A stretch of DNA of 64,000 nucleotides, from assembly GCF_964194025.1 (NCBI RefSeq), contig NC_134480.1:25668001-25732000 (forward strand), given 5' to 3'. Every line of letters begins with the position of its first letter. Within the stretch, counting starts at the first letter, position 1. This stretch comes from Convolutriloba macropyga. Its lineage: Eukaryota. Below the pieces are notes generated by a model. It saw only the letters and a list, made by a program, of their open reading frames with translations. It searched no databases and had not been told where the DNA came from. Of the stretch, positions 3,127 to 44,049 are shown in pieces. The translations under genes and the position numbers were made by a program.

Positions 3127-3326
3127 NNNNNNNNNNNNNNNNNNNNNNNNNNNNNNNNNNNNNNNNNNNNNNNNNNNNNNNNNNNNNNNNNNNNNNNNNN
3201 NNNNNNNNNNNNNNNNNNNNNNNNNNNNNNNNNNNNNNNNNNNNNNNNNNNNNNNNNNNNNNNNNNNNNNNNNNNNNNNNNNNNNNNNNNNNNNNNNNNN
3301 NNNNNNNNNNNNNNNNNNNNNNNNNN
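3127..3326. other. Assembly gap (other gaps at about 4146-4315 and 43862-44017)
   Basis: Runs of N. Confidence 0.99.
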
Positions 3327-5149
3327 AATGAATGGAAGTGAAAAAGTGAATAAGTAAAAAATTGATTAAGTAAAAAGTGATGCAAGCATTATTTTCACTG
3401 TTGTCGACAAGAGACCTCAAAAAGCCAAAAATTGGCAAATGTGTACTTTTGAGGCACAATGAAAGATCAGAGCCATTATATCATCCAACCAACAAGAAAA
3501 TCCTTCACAAGAGAATCAATTTTAATATAAAAATGTAGAAATTAGTTAGATATTTCAGATAAATAATAACCTTTGTCAACACTAGGTCTGATACCGCGAT
3601 CATAGTCTGGTTATAAAATAAACTTCGGCTTCTGCAGCATTCGAAGTTGCCAGTTGAGAATATTGCCACATGATCAGCAAAATAGAAAAGGTTTTCCTGA
3701 ATACAGTTTAATATTGATTTTCCAGATCTATTGCTCATAATTTTGAAGCTGACTGGAAATAAAAACGATTTAGTTGAAAAACGCTAAGCTCAAATTCAAA
3801 AATAGTAAATTTTAAATTTAAAATTAGTTTGCATCGTAGAAAACGACCAACAGAAGTCTTTTGAAGTATGGTTCTGAATTACGGTTGGGTAATTATAAAC
3901 AAAAATGAATAATTGTGAGTTTTTTAAGAAATGAGTAAAGATGAAATCGGCTTGCAATAAAACAACAACCAAACAAGCAACAACCTGTTAGAGGGAACGT
4001 CGCGTCCTCAAGCCTCGTGGTCTCAGTGAGACTTCGATTAGCGCCTTCGTGGAGGAGGAAAGGCTGCACTGAGTGTTTGGCTGCCTAATTTATTCCTTTG
4101 CTTATTACCTGATATTACATTTTTATTTTAATCCTTCCATACCAGNNNNNNNNNNNNNNNNNNNNNNNNNNNNNNNNNNNNNNNNNNNNNNNNNNNNNNN
4201 NNNNNNNNNNNNNNNNNNNNNNNNNNNNNNNNNNNNNNNNNNNNNNNNNNNNNNNNNNNNNNNNNNNNNNNNNNNNNNNNNNNNNNNNNNNNNNNNNNNN
4301 NNNNNNNNNNNNNNNTGTTAGTTATTTTTATGACTGGGCCGTCTCTAAACTGTCTGGAGGGGAACAACTTGGAGTGCAGCATCCGGCTAAGTGCTACTCA
4401 TCCTCCCTTTTTTTCTGAACTACATTCATCGTTGCCGGATGGTGTACAAGGCCCTTTCAATTTTGTTAAGTTTACGAATAAGAACTACCAGTAGCTGTGT
4501 GTGAATACAAAATTTGTCACCTAAGGCTCAGTATAATCAGTAAAACATCTGGTTGTTCATATCTAAAAAGTAATTAAAACAATAGAATGACTTATATATA
4601 TTTATTGCTATATGTAGTTATTAAACCAGTTTTTACTCTGATACACACCAAATGAAAATATTAATGAATTCAATTGCAGGAAAAAACGTAACTGATTTAA
4701 AGTTATACTATGGCATCGACGTAATTCATGCAGCATAATTGCGCAATTTCATTTCCTGTGGTATTATTCGTGCTCAGTAAGCTTTTTTGCGTGTGAAATT
4801 TTGAAATTATAAGATCATTTCATCTTCCTTTTCTCTGCATAAATAAAAAGGTTAAACCACTTTGTTATTATTATTGTCGGCTTTTCATGGACACAAATAC
4901 TAAAAGAACTTAAATTAAAGTTAAAATTATTGCCCAGCATGCATGTCCTGATGCCGCAAATTCGAGAGATCAACAAAATTGTCTAGAAAATTCCAAAAAG
5001 TCAGCAAAAGATATGTTTAAAGATTCAAAAACCTAGGGGGTTCATTTAAGAAACGCTACAAAAAAAGTCTGATTGACAAAAGAAATTGTTTTTGGTCAAA
5101 ATAACGCCTCAATATGTCCATTTTGAGACATAACGATAAATATAAACAT

Positions 5150-31450: not shown

Positions 31451-33210
31451 CCCATTTGGATTTCTTGGGATTGAGGCCAATGGTACAATTTGCACTTGAT
31501 TCAAGGGTTGATTTGATTACCACAGAATCACTTTCAATTTTAATTTTCGTGAATATAAGAATGCCTGATTGTTTTTGATTTATGAAATATGAAGATTGTG
31601 CGGACATAAATATTATAGAATAGGACCAATTTCATCTTGAACTTAAAATAATGTTTAGGATATTTAATTCATTGAAATGTGACACATCAGATTTTGTAAT
31701 CATGTTTTAGTCACGTTTAGAGTTTCTAGTAGAACCTTGGATATACTTTCACAAAATCCGTGAAGTAGAGAAAAATGGGCAAGACGTAAAGTAATTAGGA
31801 AAGAATCTGATTAAATTTTGCGTCAAAATTTATATTGTATTGTTTGAGAGATCTATACCAAATAAAATTGAGCAAAGTCAAGACAAGTTATGTCAGCAAG
31901 ATAAACACTTGTTCTATTGTCAATAACCTAAGGCAGATGGATGTTAATTTTACATTGCTGCTTCTTCCCATCGCCAACTTTTAAATGTGCTGCTAATTAT
32001 GTAATGAAGTATCTGGTACTTATCAAATGTTTTTCAGGCCTTCGGATGTGGTTTTTGCGATTTCGAAAAACAACTATTTCAGTCATTCAAATGTTATGCT
32101 TTTCATCCGATAATATTTCATGCATTTTTAGACCAATATCATATTACTAAATATATTCAACAATGGCTCAATTTGAAGTCCCAGTCAAAGTTGAGACGTT
32201 ACATCAAGAGATTGTTTTTCATTGTATAAAAATTTTCTATAAGTTTCTGCATATTCGATATGAGTTTGCAGCACTTCATTGTTTTTGTTTGCTGAAATTT
32301 ATTCTCGGAATAAAGTAACTTGACCAGTGGTAACTTGAATTTTATTATAAATCCCTGATTGCTGTACTCATAGCAAATCTTCAGCAATGACTTTGATTTT
32401 GCTATATGTATTGCGTCGCGAATCATGAGCTTTGTGGCACATTGCATTGATCAACTACACGCCAATCACACTCCCGTTAAATGGCACTACATTCGTTTAC
32501 GTGCCGACCTGCCAGGAAGTCTGTTTTTTTATCCTTTGCCATCCGCAGGGTTATATGTCTTCAGGTCAGCCCAATTAGGTGGAATTTTATGAAAAAAAAT
32601 TAAAGAAGGTAAGTAGGTTTTGAAATTCCTTGTTGTGTAGATTACTGTAACATCTGTTAGTGATCCAGCTTTTATAGGCGCATGCTTAATTGGTTTCTCT
32701 ATTTCAGAAGAAATGGCTCTCCTACCGGTTTAGGTCAGTTTTCGAAATGTTTTCCGCTTCAGTTTTTGCGGTCTTTTTAGAGTCACTGAAATTTTTCTCA
32801 ATTGTCTGGTTAACAATGCTTGACGACAAATTTCTATGGATTTCTCCGCCATATGTTTTTGTTGATCATAAGGGTTTCATCAAAGTATTGCCGGTTGCTT
32901 CTATCAAACAATCCTATGTATAGTACCCTCGAAGGTATTTATATGCTTGAGTGGTGCGAAGCTGTGGGAATGTGTAAATGTTCCTGTTTCTGTTGATGTT
33001 AACTTTCGGTGCCATTTACACAGAACTTTTTTTATTCGTCCTTGTCGGGGATAACTATTTCACAGTTTTATCCATTTTTTGTGAAATCGATAGTTTTAAG
33101 CAAACTAGTTCCTAGTTGAATCAACTTCTTGGGGTTTGTTTCGTATGTGCAAATATTGTCTACATATCCTTCAAATAGTTCGTAATAATGTTTTCAGTGG
33201 TGTATTTCCA

Positions 33211-34880
33211 ATGTAAAAGAAACCGATTTGTCAAATTGAAATTACTTCAAACGTTTTCGAACTTTACGTTCATCGTCAGGTTAAAACTGTTTTTACAAAT
33301 TGTTAAAAGATAAAATAATTATGTGTTTACGTTTGTCTGAGACCACACTTAAAACAATTCTAGGAACTATTCTGAAAAATTCAATCAAAATTTGTTCGAT
33401 ATGTACAAAATTTAGCCTATTTACAACTCATATTTACATCCGTTATCAATTTATTTAAAAACATTCTTTTTCCGGATTTTTCAATTTCAGCCATGTTCTT
33501 GTATTTTTAGGGTTATTCTGAATTTGCCCTAAACTGAAGTTTACCTCTTGTGGAGGTTTTGCAAATTACGTTTTGTCATGCACAAAATGTTTTTTGGCCC
33601 TATGTATCTTCATCTAGTCAAAATTATAATTTGAACTAATATTTTAACGTGAGTTCCCGCTCCTATATTCATCATGTGTGTCTAGTGCCGGCTTCAGCTT
33701 GCTGATGTATATAGCTTCGATAATAATTAGTTTTTCTACCGTCTGACAGGCGTCCAGAATTTTTCATTCAATGTCATTCGTGGCGCCACGACATTCAACC
33801 AGATGTTGACCCACCTGTGAATCCTTCTTTTGATGTTCTGTTATCCTTGTGGTAACATGCCGGTTTGTTTGCCCAACATAGATGGATCCGCATCCATTAC
33901 GTTTAATCTAATATACCACGTAGGATTTCAGGTCTCCATCGAAAGCTGATTTCAGGGTGGGGAGGCATGATCTTAATTTCCGCGTCGTAAAAACCACTTG
34001 CAACTCGCATAGTTTCTTCAATTTGCTTGCAAAGCTTTGAGTAAGGTTGCCTCTGGATTTTAGAAAAATAGTTGGCTTATCATAAGATCCAGTGATGTTC
34101 TTTTGGTGTTGTTTTCAATTGGTCTTTCCCGCCACTTATTATCTTTTCTGGAGTCTGGTTCACTATTTTTGAAGACCAATCTTCTGGATATTGATTTTCC
34201 GTCCAGCAGGTTTTGTTCTTTTCAAGAGCCTGATCGAAGGCCAATCAATTAGAGGTTGCATTGAAAACCCTATGAACCGTCCCTTGAATCACATTTTGTT
34301 TATGCTGGAGCGATGCACAGCTGCGAAAATTCAGTTTTATTTCAATGTCAGTTGGTTTTTGATACCAATGACAGGTTACTTTACTTTTGCTGCTCACATT
34401 TACGTTAATTTGAAGAAAAGCCAGATTCCCTTCCATGTTAATTTTTTCTAAGGTAAATTGCAGGTTGTTGTCTAAAGAATTTGCAAATTTTAAATACTCG
34501 TCCGGGTCACCACGAACCGTGCAGATAATATCATCCACATAACTTTTATACAATTTCATCTCCTCATAACGCCCGACTATCTGTTGGTTGTTGCAATAAG
34601 TTCAAATCCAAAACACCCTTGATGTTGGTGTATTCCTCATTCGATATCTTTTGGAATCTTGCATGAAACCAGTTTTTGCATGACTCACATTCTACTCCGC
34701 TTCCTCAGAAAGTCATTCTCCGTTTACAGTCTTTGCACTTCCCCTTTTGGTGGGATCTGGAAATATTTTCATTGAGCTCTGGTTTTTGCAGTGATGCCTC
34801 AAACGATTTCATCCACACGTTTGTCAGTATTACAGCCAGTGATGCACCCATAGCCAGACCATCTCATTGTACTTCCACCT
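33211..34880 (-). mobile_element. Penelope-like element copy B (5'-truncated; RT C-half + GIY-YIG endonuclease + 3' pLTR)
   Basis: DGLAMGASLAVILTNVWMK, the PHD insert, YVDDI, NLQFTLE, WYQKPTD, YVGQTNRHVTTRITEH and EAIYISKLKPALDT. Flanked by the 10-bp direct repeat TGTATTTCCA at 33201-33210 and 34881-34890. Confidence 0.92.
33249..33279 (-). ncRNA. Hammerhead-ribozyme-like core in the PLE-B 3' pLTR (probably degenerate)
   Basis: Minus strand reads CUGACGA-U-GAAC-GUAAA-GUUC-GAAA-ACGUUU: core boxes, a 4-bp helix II and a palindromic AAACGUUU. Helix I pairing is not evident. Confidence 0.5.
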
Positions 34881-35461
34881 TGTATTTCCACCTTGAAAAC
34901 ATTTCCAAACATAATTATTCATTTTCCGTAGTGCTCCTTACTATTTTGACATTTTATGTGATACCAGTTTTCGCATTCAACTGCCTTGCTATTCCGAAGA
35001 ATTTTTTGACAGCCAGGGCATCTTTATGTCGCATTTTTGGTTCTCCAGAGGTCATCTCGTTCTCAGCACTCAGTTTGACTTCAAGGGATTTCATCCAAAT
35101 ATTGGGCAAGATAAATGCCAGGGAAGCCCCATTGCAAATCTTTGTATCAGTACCAGTTACCTTTTGAAAATAAGCGTTTGTGACTGGAAGTTTGAGTAGG
35201 AGCTTAATTGGTGCTCGTTCGATATCGGGGAGGGTGTCACTGGAGTAAAGACACCGCAGGGCGACTTCGATGGCTTCGTCAAAAAATGGTTTCATTTGTG
35301 ATAAGGACTTCCTTGAATAGATAAAATGGGGCGCGTTGGTGTCTTTTCTTTGTGGACTTTTTCCAACTCATACAGTCGAGCTGGTTGTGCTACTGTCGTT
35401 CGTACTTTTTGGTAATTTTATAATTTTTTCCGTAATTAGTTTTGTTTTTGTTCCATTGGAT

Positions 35462-35612
35462 CTATTCTGTTTTGCCCCCCCAGTGTTTTTTACGCCCCCC
35501 TACTTACAAATTATATGTTGTTATATAGTACGTTACTATGTAAAGAATTAGCACGTGCTTCTGGGGGGCGTAAAAAATATAAGCCCACTAAGCTGGGGGG
35601 GAAACAGAATAG
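35462..35612. mobile_element. 151-bp MITE inserted in PLE copy A
   Basis: TIRs ctattctgttt..cccccc(c)ag and ctgggggggaaacagaatag, with an internal inverted pair ttttttacgccccc / gggggcgtaaaaaa. Absent from the homologous position in PLE copy C. Confidence 0.85.
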
Positions 35613-35789
35613 ATTCTTTTCATTTCAAACTAAAGTTCCGTTTACATCTTTTTCTGTTTTGAAAATTATCTGGTCATTTTTTTCCACCCGCGAAAATTGG
35701 GGACAATCCAGTATATTTGATTGATATCTTGTTTTCAAAACACTGCCCTTATCAAAAGGTGTGGCTAAAAATGTAGATAACTTGATTTC

Positions 35790-38700
35790 AATAAAGGTCA
35801 ACAATAACAGAACGGTGCTAACCTCATTCGAGGTCAAACAAAAAGAGCAAAATCCAAGCAACTGATCGTAAAAACGAAAATTCAAAGTGCACTGTGTGCT
35901 GTTAGAATGAAAACTGAACACCACGTCTGCTAATGAAATGAATAAATTACCAGTCAGTTTCTGGAGGTCAAAGTTTGGTATGAAGCAGTATACATTTAAG
36001 TTCACGTTAGGTTTCAAATTAGGTTTATATGTACAGATTTATGGGTTAACTTTGGCATTAAATGCACAGGTTGAAGACTCCTCCTTGTAAGAGCGTTGTC
36101 CTCTGTGGCCTCTTATACAAAGGATTGTGCTTCTAAGTAGGGCGAAGCTCAGGGATGTTCTGATGAAATTTTTGACGTTAGGATACGTGTCTTTCGTCTT
36201 TTCAGCAATTCTTGATGCAAGTCGTTTTATAACTATTGTGGAGCCGGGGCCGCTATCTCCTGTGGTCGAGAAGATCAGAGGGATAAAAAAGCTATGCTCA
36301 ACTTCAACAATTCTGTCCTGGTATTTGGTTTCTTTCGTCATTTCGTGGAACTTGTGGCTCGCTTTGATTCCAATACGTCTGTTTGTTGGAGCAAACGGGC
36401 TGAAGACTTTAACATCATAGTATGATTTCTCAAAGCGAGAACCACATAGGCCTTTAGCTGAGATATCTAATCGTGCTTCCTCGTCCTTGCAGGTTGCGGG
36501 TTTAGGCTCTCATTGTTGAGAGGCTGCAGGTGAGGTTCAACTTCGATATCGTAACAAGTTTTTCGCATAAGCTCGGCGAAGAGGTCTCTTACTTCATTAT
36601 GCCTGATTATTGGATATCCTCCTTAGGGCAGTGAAGGGCATGGGATACAAGAAACTTCGAGCCACACGCACACTTCTCGGAAATATTTTTGAATTGCCAG
36701 CCATATCGAATGCATAGGGCGCCTCCGAACTCGGTTTTGGTTAACCAGAGGTCATGTCGTTCTATTGGCAGTGCATTCAACCATGTAGACGCGCCTTTCT
36801 CACTGGCTAGTTGTACTGAATATTTGAGATCTTCGGTCATGTTTGCAAGAATTTCTTCTGACTTCTGTTTGTTTTGGGTTTTGTTTTTGTCATCGTATGT
36901 CTGTTTTGATTCTCTCTTGATGTAGTGTCGCTGTTGTTACGTCAAAATGATCTAGTGGGCTGCTGAGAAGTTTCGATTGGTCATACGCGGGGACTAAATC
37001 GTCAAGTGCTCTGATTGCCATCCCGCCATTCTTTACAGGTAGACTCAACAGGGATCTCATACCATCATCGGGGGAGTCCTGGTCGGTCATATTCGGTATT
37101 AGGCTTTTACGGATGATGTTCTCTGAGTCAGCTAGGATGGTATCAGCTTTTGGGGTTGTACGTAGCAGGAATGTCAATTTACTTTGAGCGCCTCGGGAAA
37201 AACAGTGATAGGCTGCTTGCGGTGACGATTTGGCAAACTCGCTTAGGTTCTTCAGAAATTTTTGTTGTGTTTCTGATTGCTCTTGAACAAACTTCTGGCA
37301 GGCTTCTGCAGACCCTATTACAGAGCCGAGAACTCGTGCACCGTCAACGATTTGTACGTTTGTGTTATTGAAAAAATGTTTCGCTTTTTCAATGGTGTGA
37401 GGCTTGACAATTAGCTGGCATTTGGGGGCGTTGTCAAAGTATCCAAATCCTTCACCAATTTTGTTCAGCTGCTTGAAGAACAACAGGAGTTTTTCAATTG
37501 TTCCCGCTGCAGTGCCATCGTCATTGTACCATTTTTGCTAAACTGATTCCATGTTCATTCTGTCTATCAGCGGCCTTGACGCAATGCCATACCTTAGCAT
37601 TGCCAAAGGATCCCCTTGTGTACATCCTTCCTGGGAAAGAAGGGTCTGCTTGTCGACGTACAGATTGCTGGGGTTTTGGTAGGAGTTGTTTAGGGCGCAG
37701 TAGTTAGAAGGGCAGATTCTCCTTATGTTTTCAAGCGCTGTTGCTCTGTTCAGGTTGTTGAAGGCATTCGTTGCATCTACCTCGTTGCTGAGTAGCAGAG
37801 CTTAACAGGAGTCTTTCTCAAATTCGGTTCGCAGGGAGTGAATAGAGTACTCGATTCCCGCGGTCTGACCCATGCAAAGCTGGTCGTTTCCGCCTATCGA
37901 TCGTAATTCTGCATCAACACTTTTGGCGATACATCTTCCGATTATCCTCCGAAGTACTTCACCAATTCCTATCGGTCTAACTCCAGGGTTTTTGTCCAGA
38001 GGAATAAGTCGGCAGCTGTTATATGGCATCAGGGTTTCTGATTCGAGTTTTTGGGTCGCGATTCGTTTGGCAATAGCTGCGACTGTGTTCTTAAGGTTGT
38101 CAGAGTTCTTTTCGAAACAGGTCAAAATCCTTCTCCATTGCGCTGAGTCTAAGCCGGACGGACCATGTGCTCCGTTAGTGCGCAGGACAGCTTTTTCAAC
38201 CAATGCTGCATCGATTCTTTCGAAGACTGCTGGGTGGTAAGCAAGGGGTTGTTGTCCTGTAACAAGACACTGTTCGTTCAACGAGGATGCAGGTGGGTGC
38301 TTCGAAAGAAGAATACTCAAAACATCGCTGTCTCCAATCTTGTGTTTCAACGGAAGGACTCCTCCTTTTTCGCCGGCCAGCACTCGCATCGCGCCTGAGA
38401 CTTTTCCTGCTTTCATCATTTCATTGAAACGTTTGATTGGTTTGGGCTCACTTACTTTTTGTTTGGCTGCTGGCTTTCGTTTTTGCAATGCTCCTGCCTC
38501 ATGGAAAAGTTCCGTCAGTTTTCCACTAAACCAAAGGTCAAGACGTCGGCTTAGCGTTTTATTGGCAGAGTTGTCGTCGGCCTTCTTTGTCCGGCAGAGC
38601 AGTAGGTGGGGCATGATCATGGCAGCGAGCAATGAGAAGGGGGCATTTGCTGATTGGTCTTCAAGAGGTTTAAGGGCGTCGTTTAGTGCGTTGATAAATG

Positions 38701-39132
38701 AGTTGCCTGCTTTGCATTTGTTGATTCTCATGAAGCTTGGCTTCCAGTGAACGATTTCTTGGTAGATAGGAAGCAGGTCTTCTGGTTTTTCTAGCGCTGC
38801 CCAAAAATTTGTTCTGGTGTTTGTTGGCTTTGGGGGTTCACTGGGTTTTGAAAATTTGGGCGTACGTCTCCCGCTATGGCTTGGCCCGGTTCCGGGCCCC
38901 TCTCACAGCCAGCTTGCTCCTGAAGGTCACCAGGACCAACAAGCGAAGCAGAGTCTGGGCTAACTCGGGGAATCGCGGGCCTAAAACAGTATAAACAGAT
39001 CCACTCCACGTTTTTGGCTGTTTTCGAGACGTCTGCACATTTGATGTGGGCATATTCCTTGCATTTTTGACAGGGGACACTGTAGGAGTTGTGGTGAATA
39101 TTCTTTTTGCATATAATACAGTCCCATTTCAT
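35790..39132 (-). mobile_element. CRE-clade non-LTR retrotransposon (PHD - RT - CCHC - REL endonuclease) with a few stops and frameshifts
   Basis: GAHGPSG, RLIPLDKNPGVRPIGIGEVLRR, DATNAFN, QGDPLAM, WYNDD, CACG..SHALHC, RHNEVRD, RLDI...YDVKV and LSFALLRSTILCIRG. The N-terminal ORF 39132-38791 holds a C4HC3 finger. Confidence 0.92.
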
Positions 39133-40439: not shown

Positions 40440-41417
40440 AACTAAGATAAACAAAACAGAGTTTCTTGGAACATTGTGTGTCAATAAAACTAATTTCTGA
40501 AATTAAGTTTTCCAATTCATTTTTTATTTGATCTTTGAATTTAGATTTTTGAAGTTCTTAGTCACTGTCTACCGTTTCGTAACATTTTGGAACAATTCAA
40601 TGTTCCGGTTCGCTAAAATGTAATTTTTGAATTGAGCCAAATTACAACTGTTAACTAGTATTCCAATGTCAACTTCTGGCTTCAGTATTCATCGCACGTC
40701 TTCAGCATTGGCTTCCTTTGTGCTATATGCAATTTTTCGAGAGTCATCAGTTTTTGTGGCACATTGCACTAATCTATTATACGCCAATCAAACGCGCGTA
40801 ATTTGCCACAATATTCGCTTAAGAAAAGTGTTTGTCCCTCTGCTTTAGCTTATCGCTTGATTTGAATTTAGCTATTGTTTTGCGGTCCTTTTTGAGCAAC
40901 CTAAAAATTTTCCGATATAAAATGATAAACAAAACTAAGATAAACAAAACAGAGTTTCTTGGAACATTGTGTGTCAATAAAACTAATTTCTGAAATTAAG
41001 TTTTCCAATTCATTTTTTATTTGATCTTTGAATTTAGATTTTTGAAGTTCTTAGTCACTGTCTACCGTTTCGTAACATTTTGGAACAATTCAATGTTCCG
41101 GTTCGCTAAAATGTAATTTTTGAATTGAGCCAAATTACAACTGTTAACTAGTATTCCAATGTCAACTTCTGGCTTCAGTATTCATCGCACGTCTTCAGCA
41201 TTGGCTTCCTTTGTGCTATATGCATTTTTTCGAGAGTCATCAGTTTTTGTGGCACATTGCACTAATCTATTATACGCCAATCAAACGCGCGTAATTTGCC
41301 ACAATATTCGCTTAAGAAAAGTGTTTGTCCCTCTGCTTTAGCTTATCGCTTGATTTGAATTTAGCTATTGTTTTGCGGTCCTTTTTGAGCAACCTAAAAA
41401 TTTTCCGATATAAAATG
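40440..41417. repeat. Near-perfect tandem duplication, 493-bp period (40440-40924, 40933-41417)
   Basis: ORFs at 40666 and 41159 differ by one residue; only one mismatch was seen between copies. Confidence 0.97.
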
Positions 41418-42870
41418 CCTGACGAACAATTCGCTGGATAATGATTTTTTCACCATTTGGTTTCGTTGATTTTTAGGGCTTCGTAAATGTATTGCCAGTT
41501 GATGCTGGATCGAAATCGTCTACGGAAAGTACCCTCTACAATATTTTTCTTATGCTGGAGGGGAGTGCAGCTACGGAAATTAAGAATTGTTCCATTGTGT
41601 TGGCTTTTGGTACCATTTACGCCTCACTTGTCTTTGTTCATCAACGTAGACTGCCATATCCATAATGGCTAGTTCATGTTAATCCATTTTTTCCATTGTG
41701 AACTCCAAATCTTATGCAAATTGTTTTCTAGTTCAAGCAAATTATTGGGTTGGTCTTTTACTGTGCAAATATGTCATCTATATATCTTGAAAATAGTTTT
41801 TGTTTTCTCGTTTGGTTATCAGTTGATGAGTTTTCACATTCGAAGCATTTCCAAACATTCCCCTATTTTTTTGTATTGCTGCTTTCTTATATTTGGACAT
41901 TTTATGATACCAGCTCTCATTTTTTCGCACTCGACGGCTCTTCTATTCCAAACCACTTTTTTATGGCAGAAGGGGCATTTTTATTGGAATTATTTGTTTC
42001 GCCCAGCCTCATCTCATACTCAGCACTAAGTTTTTCCTCTAAAGTTTTCATCCAAATATTAGCCAAGATCTTTGCCAGGGAAGCCACCCATTGCCAAACC
42101 GTATTTTTGACAGTACCAGTTACCATTGTTTTTAGAATAACATCTGCGACTGCTAGTTTGAGTAGGAGCTTAAGTTTCGATCTTTCAATATTGGGAGGGG
42201 TGACACTGGAGTAAAGACATCGTAGAGCAATTTGATGGCTTCCGAGGCGTGGACAATAGTGTTTGAACTTTTGACATCTTGTAATACAATTCGCTCATTT
42301 GCCTCAAGCTCGTTTCAAGTCTTTTTCTAGCTATAAGACTCGAATTGTCGATGTTTGCTCCTGGCACCTTTTCAGAAAGTTGAGTAAAAATTTGTTTAAA
42401 TCGTAAGAGCTTCCAGGAATAGATAAAACAGAGCGCATTGGTGTGTTTTCTTTGTGAACTTCTGTCAACTCATACAGTCTCGTTGGTTGTGCGCCGGTTG
42501 TTCGTAATTTTTGATTATTTTTCCGTAATGAGATCTTGTTCATTTTAAAGTAAAGTTCCGTTTAAATCTTTTTGTACTTTGAGAATTATCTCGGCATTTT
42601 TTTGTCTCCAGTTTCGAAAAATGGGGCAGTCCAGTATTCTGTTCATTTTTGATTCTTTTGTTTTCATAACACAGAATGTGTTACCCTTATCTAAAGGTAC
42701 AGCTAAAAGATCGTTTTCTTTAAGAAATTTTGCCACCCTTGATAGTCCTCTGTCCGCCGGTGTCTTTTAATTTCTTAGCGTACTGTTTGGTGGATGCCTC
42801 TACCTCACAAAGCTTTTCACCGCAAACACCATTTTCTTTTATACTAACTAACCCGTCATATATCGTATAG
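40440..42870 (-). mobile_element. Penelope-like element copy C (decayed), with a tandemly duplicated 3' end
   Basis: LAVPLDKGN, GAQPTRLYELTEVHKENTPMRSVLS, GLAMG.ASLAKILANIWMK, the PHD insert, RYIDDI and the GIY-YIG C-terminus KLMTLEKLHIAQRKPMLKTCDEY. Confidence 0.88.
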
Positions 42871-43781: not shown

Positions 43782-44049
43782 GTACATAACCCTATTTAAC
43801 CCATAACATTGAATTGTAACCATGCTAAAATACGTTTACCTTGAATTTTTAAATTTAGGAANNNNNNNNNNNNNNNNNNNNNNNNNNNNNNNNNNNNNNN
43901 NNNNNNNNNNNNNNNNNNNNNNNNNNNNNNNNNNNNNNNNNNNNNNNNNNNNNNNNNNNNNNNNNNNNNNNNNNNNNNNNNNNNNNNNNNNNNNNNNNNN
44001 NNNNNNNNNNNNNNNNNATAATTATTATTAGGACTTTCACAAAAGTGCG

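Follow-up and report, generated by a model that had tools for sequence, protein, structure and literature searches.

A PHD finger between reverse transcriptase motifs B and C in a Penelope-like element family of Convolutriloba macropyga, with a proposed role in histone docking

The stretch of DNA considered here, which we call the window, comprises 64,000 nucleotides of the Convolutriloba macropyga genome (contig NC_134480.1, positions 25,668,001 to 25,732,000), with three runs of N (3127-3326, 4146-4315 and 43862-44017) that make up 526 bases together. On its minus strand, at 33213-34872, lies a decayed, 5'-truncated Penelope-like element (PLE), hereafter copy B, in which residues 453-868 of an 868-aa open reading frame (ORF) and the 3' untranslated region can be recognized by blastn and tblastn. 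It shares 88.6% identity with the intact copy L008 (1499-3187) over 1691 nt by blastn, and 76-85% amino acid identity with the family protein by tblastn; its 3' terminus is the canonical 3' end of the family, ...GGTTTCTTTTAC. Read in the direction of translation, the element begins with reverse transcriptase (RT) motif 4(B) and its helix, DGLAMGASLAVILTNVWMKSFE (34798-34863), which was aligned to the invariant G-A-M-G...N-W columns of two alignments (A1 and A2). There follow a decayed C4HC3 PHD finger (34593-34737), identified by nucleotide alignment to two intact copies and by weak PHD matches on its pieces, and the catalytic YVDD of RT motif 5(C) (34530-34541), read directly from the peptide. 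RT motifs 6-7 and the thumb occupy 34083-34529 (tblastn), with one stop at 34245-34247; homologues of this thumb region carry a precomputed match to HTH_animal (PF26215). The element closes with a stop-broken GIY-YIG endonuclease (EN) bearing a CCHH motif (33662-33922), assigned from a weak GIY-YIG match on one piece and from the intact ORF, and with the 3' untranslated region (33213-33661; blastn).

The finger of copy B is badly damaged. On the minus strand, from 34740 down to about 34630, one reads KCKDCKRRMTF, a stop and then GSGVECESCKNWFHARFQKISNEEY, after which the next frame continues with VFWI, a stop and TYC. Nucleotide alignment to the two intact copies places the first stop at 34705-34707 and shows Phe in place of the sixth zinc ligand at 34654-34656; the frame is shifted by the loss of 2 nt between 34613 and 34612, and the seventh ligand has become a stop at 34602-34604, such that two zinc ligands are gone in all. 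The two broken pieces still return PHD matches, albeit weak and sub-threshold ones (E 0.007 and 0.025). An earlier note, made from the letters of the window, had read these peptides as a decayed C4HC3 PHD finger with one frameshift and two stops. All of the peptides that it quoted are indeed present on the minus strand, its count is borne out by the alignment to intact copies, with one more ligand lost besides, and the finger is genuine, as the intact ORF described below makes clear. Copy B itself is an ordinary dead repeat, namely a 5'-truncated insertion of a high-copy, recently active canonical PLE with a C-terminal endonuclease.

Copy B is nested within an older PLE of a related family, just past the finger of that older element. 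The 5' part of the recipient, corresponding to about residues 242-534 of a diverged PHD-bearing PLE, lies at 34925-35786 on the minus strand and includes the remnant of its own finger, CPGC...CENWYHIKC (34922-35023, minus strand; peptide read and weak domain match), while the 3' part lies at 32444-33212, also on the minus strand, with a decayed motif C, YVDN, near 33100 and a GIY-YIG remnant at 32444-32575 (tblastn and blastn for both parts). The sequence TGGAAATACA flanks copy B on both sides and may represent a target-site duplication. Further along, at 41324-42857 on the minus strand, tblastn reveals copy C, a further decayed member of the diverged family, in which a PHD remnant separates motif B from motif C; the older PLE and copy C thus carry finger remnants of the same kind at the same B-C site. 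A direct repeat, 40508-40924 and 41001-41417 (99.8% identical, period 493), holds the GIY-YIG end of copy C's family and looks like a pseudo-LTR or partial tandem. A PHD-like stretch at 38986-39123 (minus strand), 30% identical to the PLE finger by tblastn, stands at the start of a neighboring non-LTR-type retrotransposon (ORFs 36039-38731); in this genome, it would seem, retroelements have repeatedly taken up PHD fingers as accessory domains. Several copies are accompanied by a hairpin that contains long runs of G and of C, found in the window at about 35480-35600 and in another locus of the family (L013:721-915). Its Rfam match, to MIR7533, reaches 45 bits where the gathering score is 230, and the hairpin is probably a MITE-like palindrome, not a microRNA.

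What is said below of the intact protein was read from natural open copies and not from a consensus sequence. The same genome (1.18 Gb) contains 2068 first-look candidate copies of copy B's family, and an uninterrupted frame of 869 codons is found in 6 of the 19 other copies fetched. As these open copies differ from one another by just 2-4 residues, the family has been recently active. The 868-aa protein opens with a helical N-terminal region, continues with a TERT-like RT and a thumb, and ends in a GIY-YIG endonuclease that bears CCHH. Three Pfam domains exceed their cut-offs: RVT_1 at residues 334-482 (31.8 bits versus 29.6), with the match ending at the start of the insert; PHD (PF00628) at residues 498-546 (26.8 bits versus 24), covering profile positions 1-47 of 47; and GIY-YIG at residues 774-851 (25.6 bits versus 22.6). 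The element is accordingly a PLE with RT and C-terminal GIY-YIG, as the earlier note had proposed, and its PHD call is upheld by a full-length match. All six open copies carry the insert in frame, with the sequence CKDC-x12-CESC-x4-H-x2-C-x17-CTYC, a complete C4HC3 arrangement, with the hallmark Trp (WIC) two residues before the seventh ligand; the in-frame check that the note had suggested thus comes out positive. A DKG motif is found at residue 253, upstream of the RT core, and the CCHH motif of the endonuclease, CNGC...H...H, begins at residue 781. No CX2-5CxxC linker is present upstream of the endonuclease in the 868-aa ORF, the sole match to that pattern lying inside the PHD region at residue 492. 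We regard the identity and anatomy of the element, that is, a PLE family with a PHD insert of which copy B is a dead member, as very nearly certain.

Other features of the family are of the kind known for PLEs. The 5' flank of L008 is the element's own 3' end, which indicates a head-to-tail tandem. Contigs from four sequencing runs display 5'-truncation and element ends, their depth climbs toward the 3' end of the element, and no recurrent joint spanning the finger is seen among them; near-identical pieces also occur in runs labeled as other organisms, and the element was found in none of the runs catalogued as RNA. One such run (X6) contains a 355-base contig with zero differences from L008:1686-2040, across the finger region, from which it would follow either that the family is common to closely related hosts or that the labels cover one species complex. 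An Rfam hammerhead search of L008 and L013 gave no match at E ≤ 0.1, the sole Rfam match being the MIR7533-like hairpin described above, where it should be borne in mind that the 5' end of the full element is outside both loci and that minimal PLE hammerheads may escape the models. No common target is obvious in the 3' flanks of ten copies.

By the criteria of Craig and co-workers (Craig et al., 2021, PMC8557442), the presence of DKG and CCHH and the lack of a CX2-5CxxC linker class copy B's family, on its motif features, as a canonical Penelope/Poseidon-type PLE. The same features rule out the Hydra clade, whose members have an endonuclease without CCHH, DKT in place of DKG and a CxCX5C linker (PMC8557442). 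The likeness to Penelope/Poseidon-type elements extends to the single ORF, the TERT-like RT, the HTH_animal thumb and the C-terminal GIY-YIG, as well as to 5' truncation and head-to-tail tandems (features per PMC8557442). What sets copy B's family apart is the RT4(B)-RT5(C) interval, which measures 33 aa in ordinary members and here contains a PHD insert of 74 aa.

The size of this insert was determined from homologues. A search of 5.8 billion proteins yielded 261 PLE homologues, and spacing was measured in the best 120. The Y of YxDD stands 107 aa from the G of GLAMG in the intact copies and exactly 33 aa from it in 88 of these 120, hence an insert of 74 aa; the stretched B'-to-YxDD spacing that had been noticed in copy B therefore holds, in sharpened form. 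A long spacing of 95-121 aa is found in 20 of the 120, whose RT regions share 41-98% identity with that of the query and which are drawn from several assemblies and from a Tara Oceans marine metagenome. Four more (P0029, P0034, P0035 and P0040), with spacings of 71, 83 or 194 aa, have other, non-PHD inserts, unrelated to the finger, in the same B-C loop, on account of which this loop appears to be a permissive insertion site. One of these inserts adds 161 aa and has C2H2-like GEKPY.C..C linkers, and the others add 38 to 50 aa of low-complexity sequence; a reading of the P0029 insert as C2H2 fingers was rejected, Pfam giving only a sub-threshold zf-H2C2_2 match.

Upon alignment of 17 long-spacing homologues (32-53% identity), no variation is seen at C54, C57, C70, C73, W76, C81, W97 and C99, and the His ligand, H78, is retained by 16 of the sequences, with only the eighth zinc ligand varying in its setting (CxxC, CxC or CxxH). 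Selection on the finger was judged by this ligand invariance across families, between which amino-acid identity is at most 60%, a divergence that would saturate dS, the copies within a family differing by post-insertion decay. In a maximum-likelihood tree of the RT core, from which the insert columns had been removed beforehand, the RTs that bear the finger are grouped to one side of a branch supported at 99% SH-aLRT, and a single gain of the finger would suffice on this topology; path lengths within the PHD group match those among ordinary PLEs. That the finger is conserved across so deep a group on one side of the tree argues for a folded zinc module that selection has maintained. When 1.84 billion representatives (50% identity clusters) were searched exhaustively with a profile, 260 matches at E ≤ 1e-10 were obtained, and among the best 150 of these 260 the finger is contiguous with motif B and/or motif C in at least 72 clusters. 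Clusters in the ESM Atlas have been automatically named 'PHD-finger/Reverse transcriptase', so the combination of PHD and RT is already present in automatic catalogues; the Atlas taxonomy places the one relative whose phylum is known in Cnidaria. Two side observations belong here. On a metagenome-assembled contig (L021:747-5580), two PHD-bearing PLE ORFs, one of 729 aa on the minus strand and one of 859 aa on the plus strand, are arranged head to head, an inverted pair of a kind described for PLEs. Two further proteins, P0142 and P0149, have three tandem PHD fingers each; matched to the PLE-finger profile, the individual fingers reach 34-56 bits, and the majority of them equal or exceed the score of Pygo (47 bits against PDB).

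The predicted structure bears on how such a module might be accommodated. An AlphaFold2 model of the full protein, built on a 66-sequence alignment, has a pLDDT of 88.2 and a pTM of 0.80, and its top solved fold is that of Tribolium TERT (3du5, E 5.6e-7). Within this model the finger has a pLDDT of 81-91 and its flanking linkers 65-76 or < 50, values that fit a predicted autonomous domain on flexible tethers. Judging from secondary structure and general polymerase architecture, the loop from the B helix to the C strand would be situated at the base of the palm and clear of the active site, and from such a position the finger could project from an intact polymerase. Modeled alone, the finger has a pLDDT of 85 and superposes on the human Pygo1 PHD finger (2dx8) to 1.0 Å over 56 columns, with TM 0.75-0.81 to Pygo PHD; the lone model also matches MLL3 PHD6, BPTF and MLL1 PHD3. 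In profile searches against solved structures, Pygo1/2 come out best (E 1.3e-11), followed by MLL1 PHD3 (E 2e-7), and all 79 of the PDB sequence matches listed are of PHD type.

With the Pygopus PHD fingers (2dx8, 2vpe, 4up0), MLL1 PHD3 and MLL3 PHD6, the PLE finger shares a helix-containing loop before the last ligand pair, a Trp divider and a Val floor. It differs from them in its low identity (27-30%), in the equivalents of Y341 and D352, in its C3-C4 spacing (CxxC as opposed to Cx3C) and in being embedded in a polymerase, whereas the Pygopus and MLL fingers belong to a Wnt co-activator and a methyltransferase, respectively. To examine the histone-tail pocket, we read the profile alignment of the finger and Pygo1 against the residues defined by Fiedler and co-workers (Fiedler et al., 2008, PMC2726290). 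The pocket divider W366 of Pygo1, essential for H3K4me binding, corresponds to the invariant Trp (W76 of A2), so that the aromatic wall between the K4 and A1/R2 pockets is present. The pocket floor is represented in the PHD-bearing clade by an invariant Val at the position of V350 and by Gly, Ser or Ala at that of A356, and the strand residue I357 by Val, Ile or Phe (Pygo1 roles per PMC2726290). On the other hand, the cage wall Y341 is replaced by Gly in copy B's family, and the pocket lip D352 by Tyr, with Arg, Phe, Trp or Asn in relatives (PMC2726290 for both roles). The methyl-lysine pocket has accordingly not been conserved as a whole, even though the H3-tail-binding groove, on the evidence of these aligned residues, looks preserved.

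These residues also decide what can be kept of the ING-type aromatic cage that had been suggested from copy B. The Trp before the His ligand, noted there as retained, is invariant in the 17 aligned homologues and the Trp wall stands; the finger, however, is closest to those of Pygopus, MLL1-PHD3 and MLL3-PHD6, not to ING, and the second cage residue, which precedes the first Cys (Pygo1 Y341, ING2 Y215), is the non-aromatic Gly just mentioned, with Tyr only in P0014 and P0023. A predicted complex of the finger and two Zn with residues 2-40 of H3 from the same genome scored 0.32, the mark being 0.34 and the controls scoring 0.00, a result that counts neither for nor against binding.

Taken with the Pygopus/MLL-type kinship, the retained Trp divider, the floor of Val and a small residue and the hydrophobic strand residue make docking on the H3 tail, in our view, the likeliest role for the finger. 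Through the finger, the ribonucleoprotein of RT and endonuclease would dock on the N-terminal tail of a histone (H3), and this docking would tether target-primed reverse transcription to particular chromatin, or bias it toward such chromatin. For tethering of the RT-endonuclease particle to histones by the finger we put the chances at a little under even, and for the whole of our best explanation, which joins the anatomy of a PHD-bearing canonical PLE to histone docking, at about even. A more specific proposal, that an old and widespread clade of canonical animal PLEs reads H3 tail methylation through a Pygopus-like finger in a surface loop of the RT palm and thereby steers target-primed reverse transcription to particular chromatin, we consider rather unlikely. 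The main competitor to histone docking is that the finger acts as a protein or nucleic-acid adaptor, recruiting a host factor or aiding assembly or import of the ribonucleoprotein, with no choice of site by chromatin mark. The closest solved fingers, those of Pygo and MLL1 PHD3, do bind non-histone partners (BCL9 HD1 and Cyp33) on another face (PMC2726290), the K4 pocket is only partly conserved, and the unrelated modules found at the same loop in other PLEs imply a site tolerant of various modules. The invariant non-ligand residues, however, namely the Trp divider and the Val floor, are the very ones with which Pygo holds the H3 tail, and we accordingly hold the adaptor role to be doubtful, if a serious contender.

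It is also conceivable that the finger binds no ligand whatsoever and is a purely structural zinc module that stabilizes the RT of this lineage. Zinc ligands and the core Trp are indeed the most conserved positions, and the variable last ligand pair is what one would expect if the fold alone mattered. Such a role sits poorly with the low-confidence linkers that flank the finger, as opposed to packing into the palm, with the existence of 88 related RTs that do without it and with the conservation of surface positions used for ligand binding in Pygo; we judge it improbable. Least credible of all is that the finger lies outside the element's protein, as a chance Cys/His pattern, a host exon captured by this one copy, an assembly chimera or a spliced intron. 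The state of copy B, in which this region is broken and its pieces fall below the PHD threshold, might on its own invite such a reading. It is contradicted by the six natural open copies, whose frame runs through the finger, by a PHD score over the Pfam cut-off in the intact ORF, by conservation in 20 divergent homologues, found in other assemblies and in a marine metagenome, and by their position on one side of a tree branch; nor does any recurrent joint cross the finger in the four runs. We attach almost no weight to it.

The earlier note knew of no PHD finger inside an RT, which is incorrect for PLEs as a whole. In the Chlamys PLEs of Chlamydomonas, PHD insertions have been reported at two places, in the interval from RT2a to RT3(A) and within the endonuclease (Craig et al., 2021, PMC8557442). 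Copy B's family and Chlamys elements are thus alike in having a PHD finger inside the PLE polyprotein, in some Chlamys families inside the RT. The latter are elements of green algae with an N-terminal endonuclease, a CxC motif and an IFD (PMC8557442), whereas copy B's family has an animal-type host, a C-terminal endonuclease and its PHD finger at the B-C loop, and the two look like independent acquisitions. A looser parallel, which we offer as functional analogy only, is to the chromodomain of chromoviruses and the PHD fingers of CR1 ORF1 and Rehavkus, likewise accessory domains of chromatin-reader type encoded by transposons (PMC8557442 and general knowledge); those domains are found at the ends of integrases, in ORF1 or in a transposase, as opposed to the catalytic core of a polymerase. 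Our search of the full-text literature, with Repbase and Dfam outside its scope, found no account of a canonical animal-type PLE with a PHD finger in the interval from motif B to motif C, and the only work it returned linking PHD fingers with PLEs was that on Chlamys (Craig et al., 2021, PMC8557442). A PHD finger in a PLE RT is not in itself new, then, the Chlamys insertions having been published, at another site. What is described here is a real architecture, conserved at the level of the family and of moderate interest, with a reader function that we propose.

To our knowledge, integration-site choice by PLEs is poorly understood, and chromatin tethering, which is established for LTR elements (through chromodomains and contacts between integrase and host factors), is not so for PLEs. 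The RT can take up whole domains in its B-C loop, a tolerance of relevance to RT engineering. For the biology of the family, a reader-type domain in the RT core of young, high-copy elements supplies a concrete hypothesis for PLE targeting, and one with convenient controls in the form of thousands of dated insertions, PHD-less PLE families in the same genome and a small domain that can be expressed separately. If the hypothesis is true, these elements would be the first PLEs guided by a chromatin reader, and their polymerase would be one that carries its reader inside the catalytic domain.
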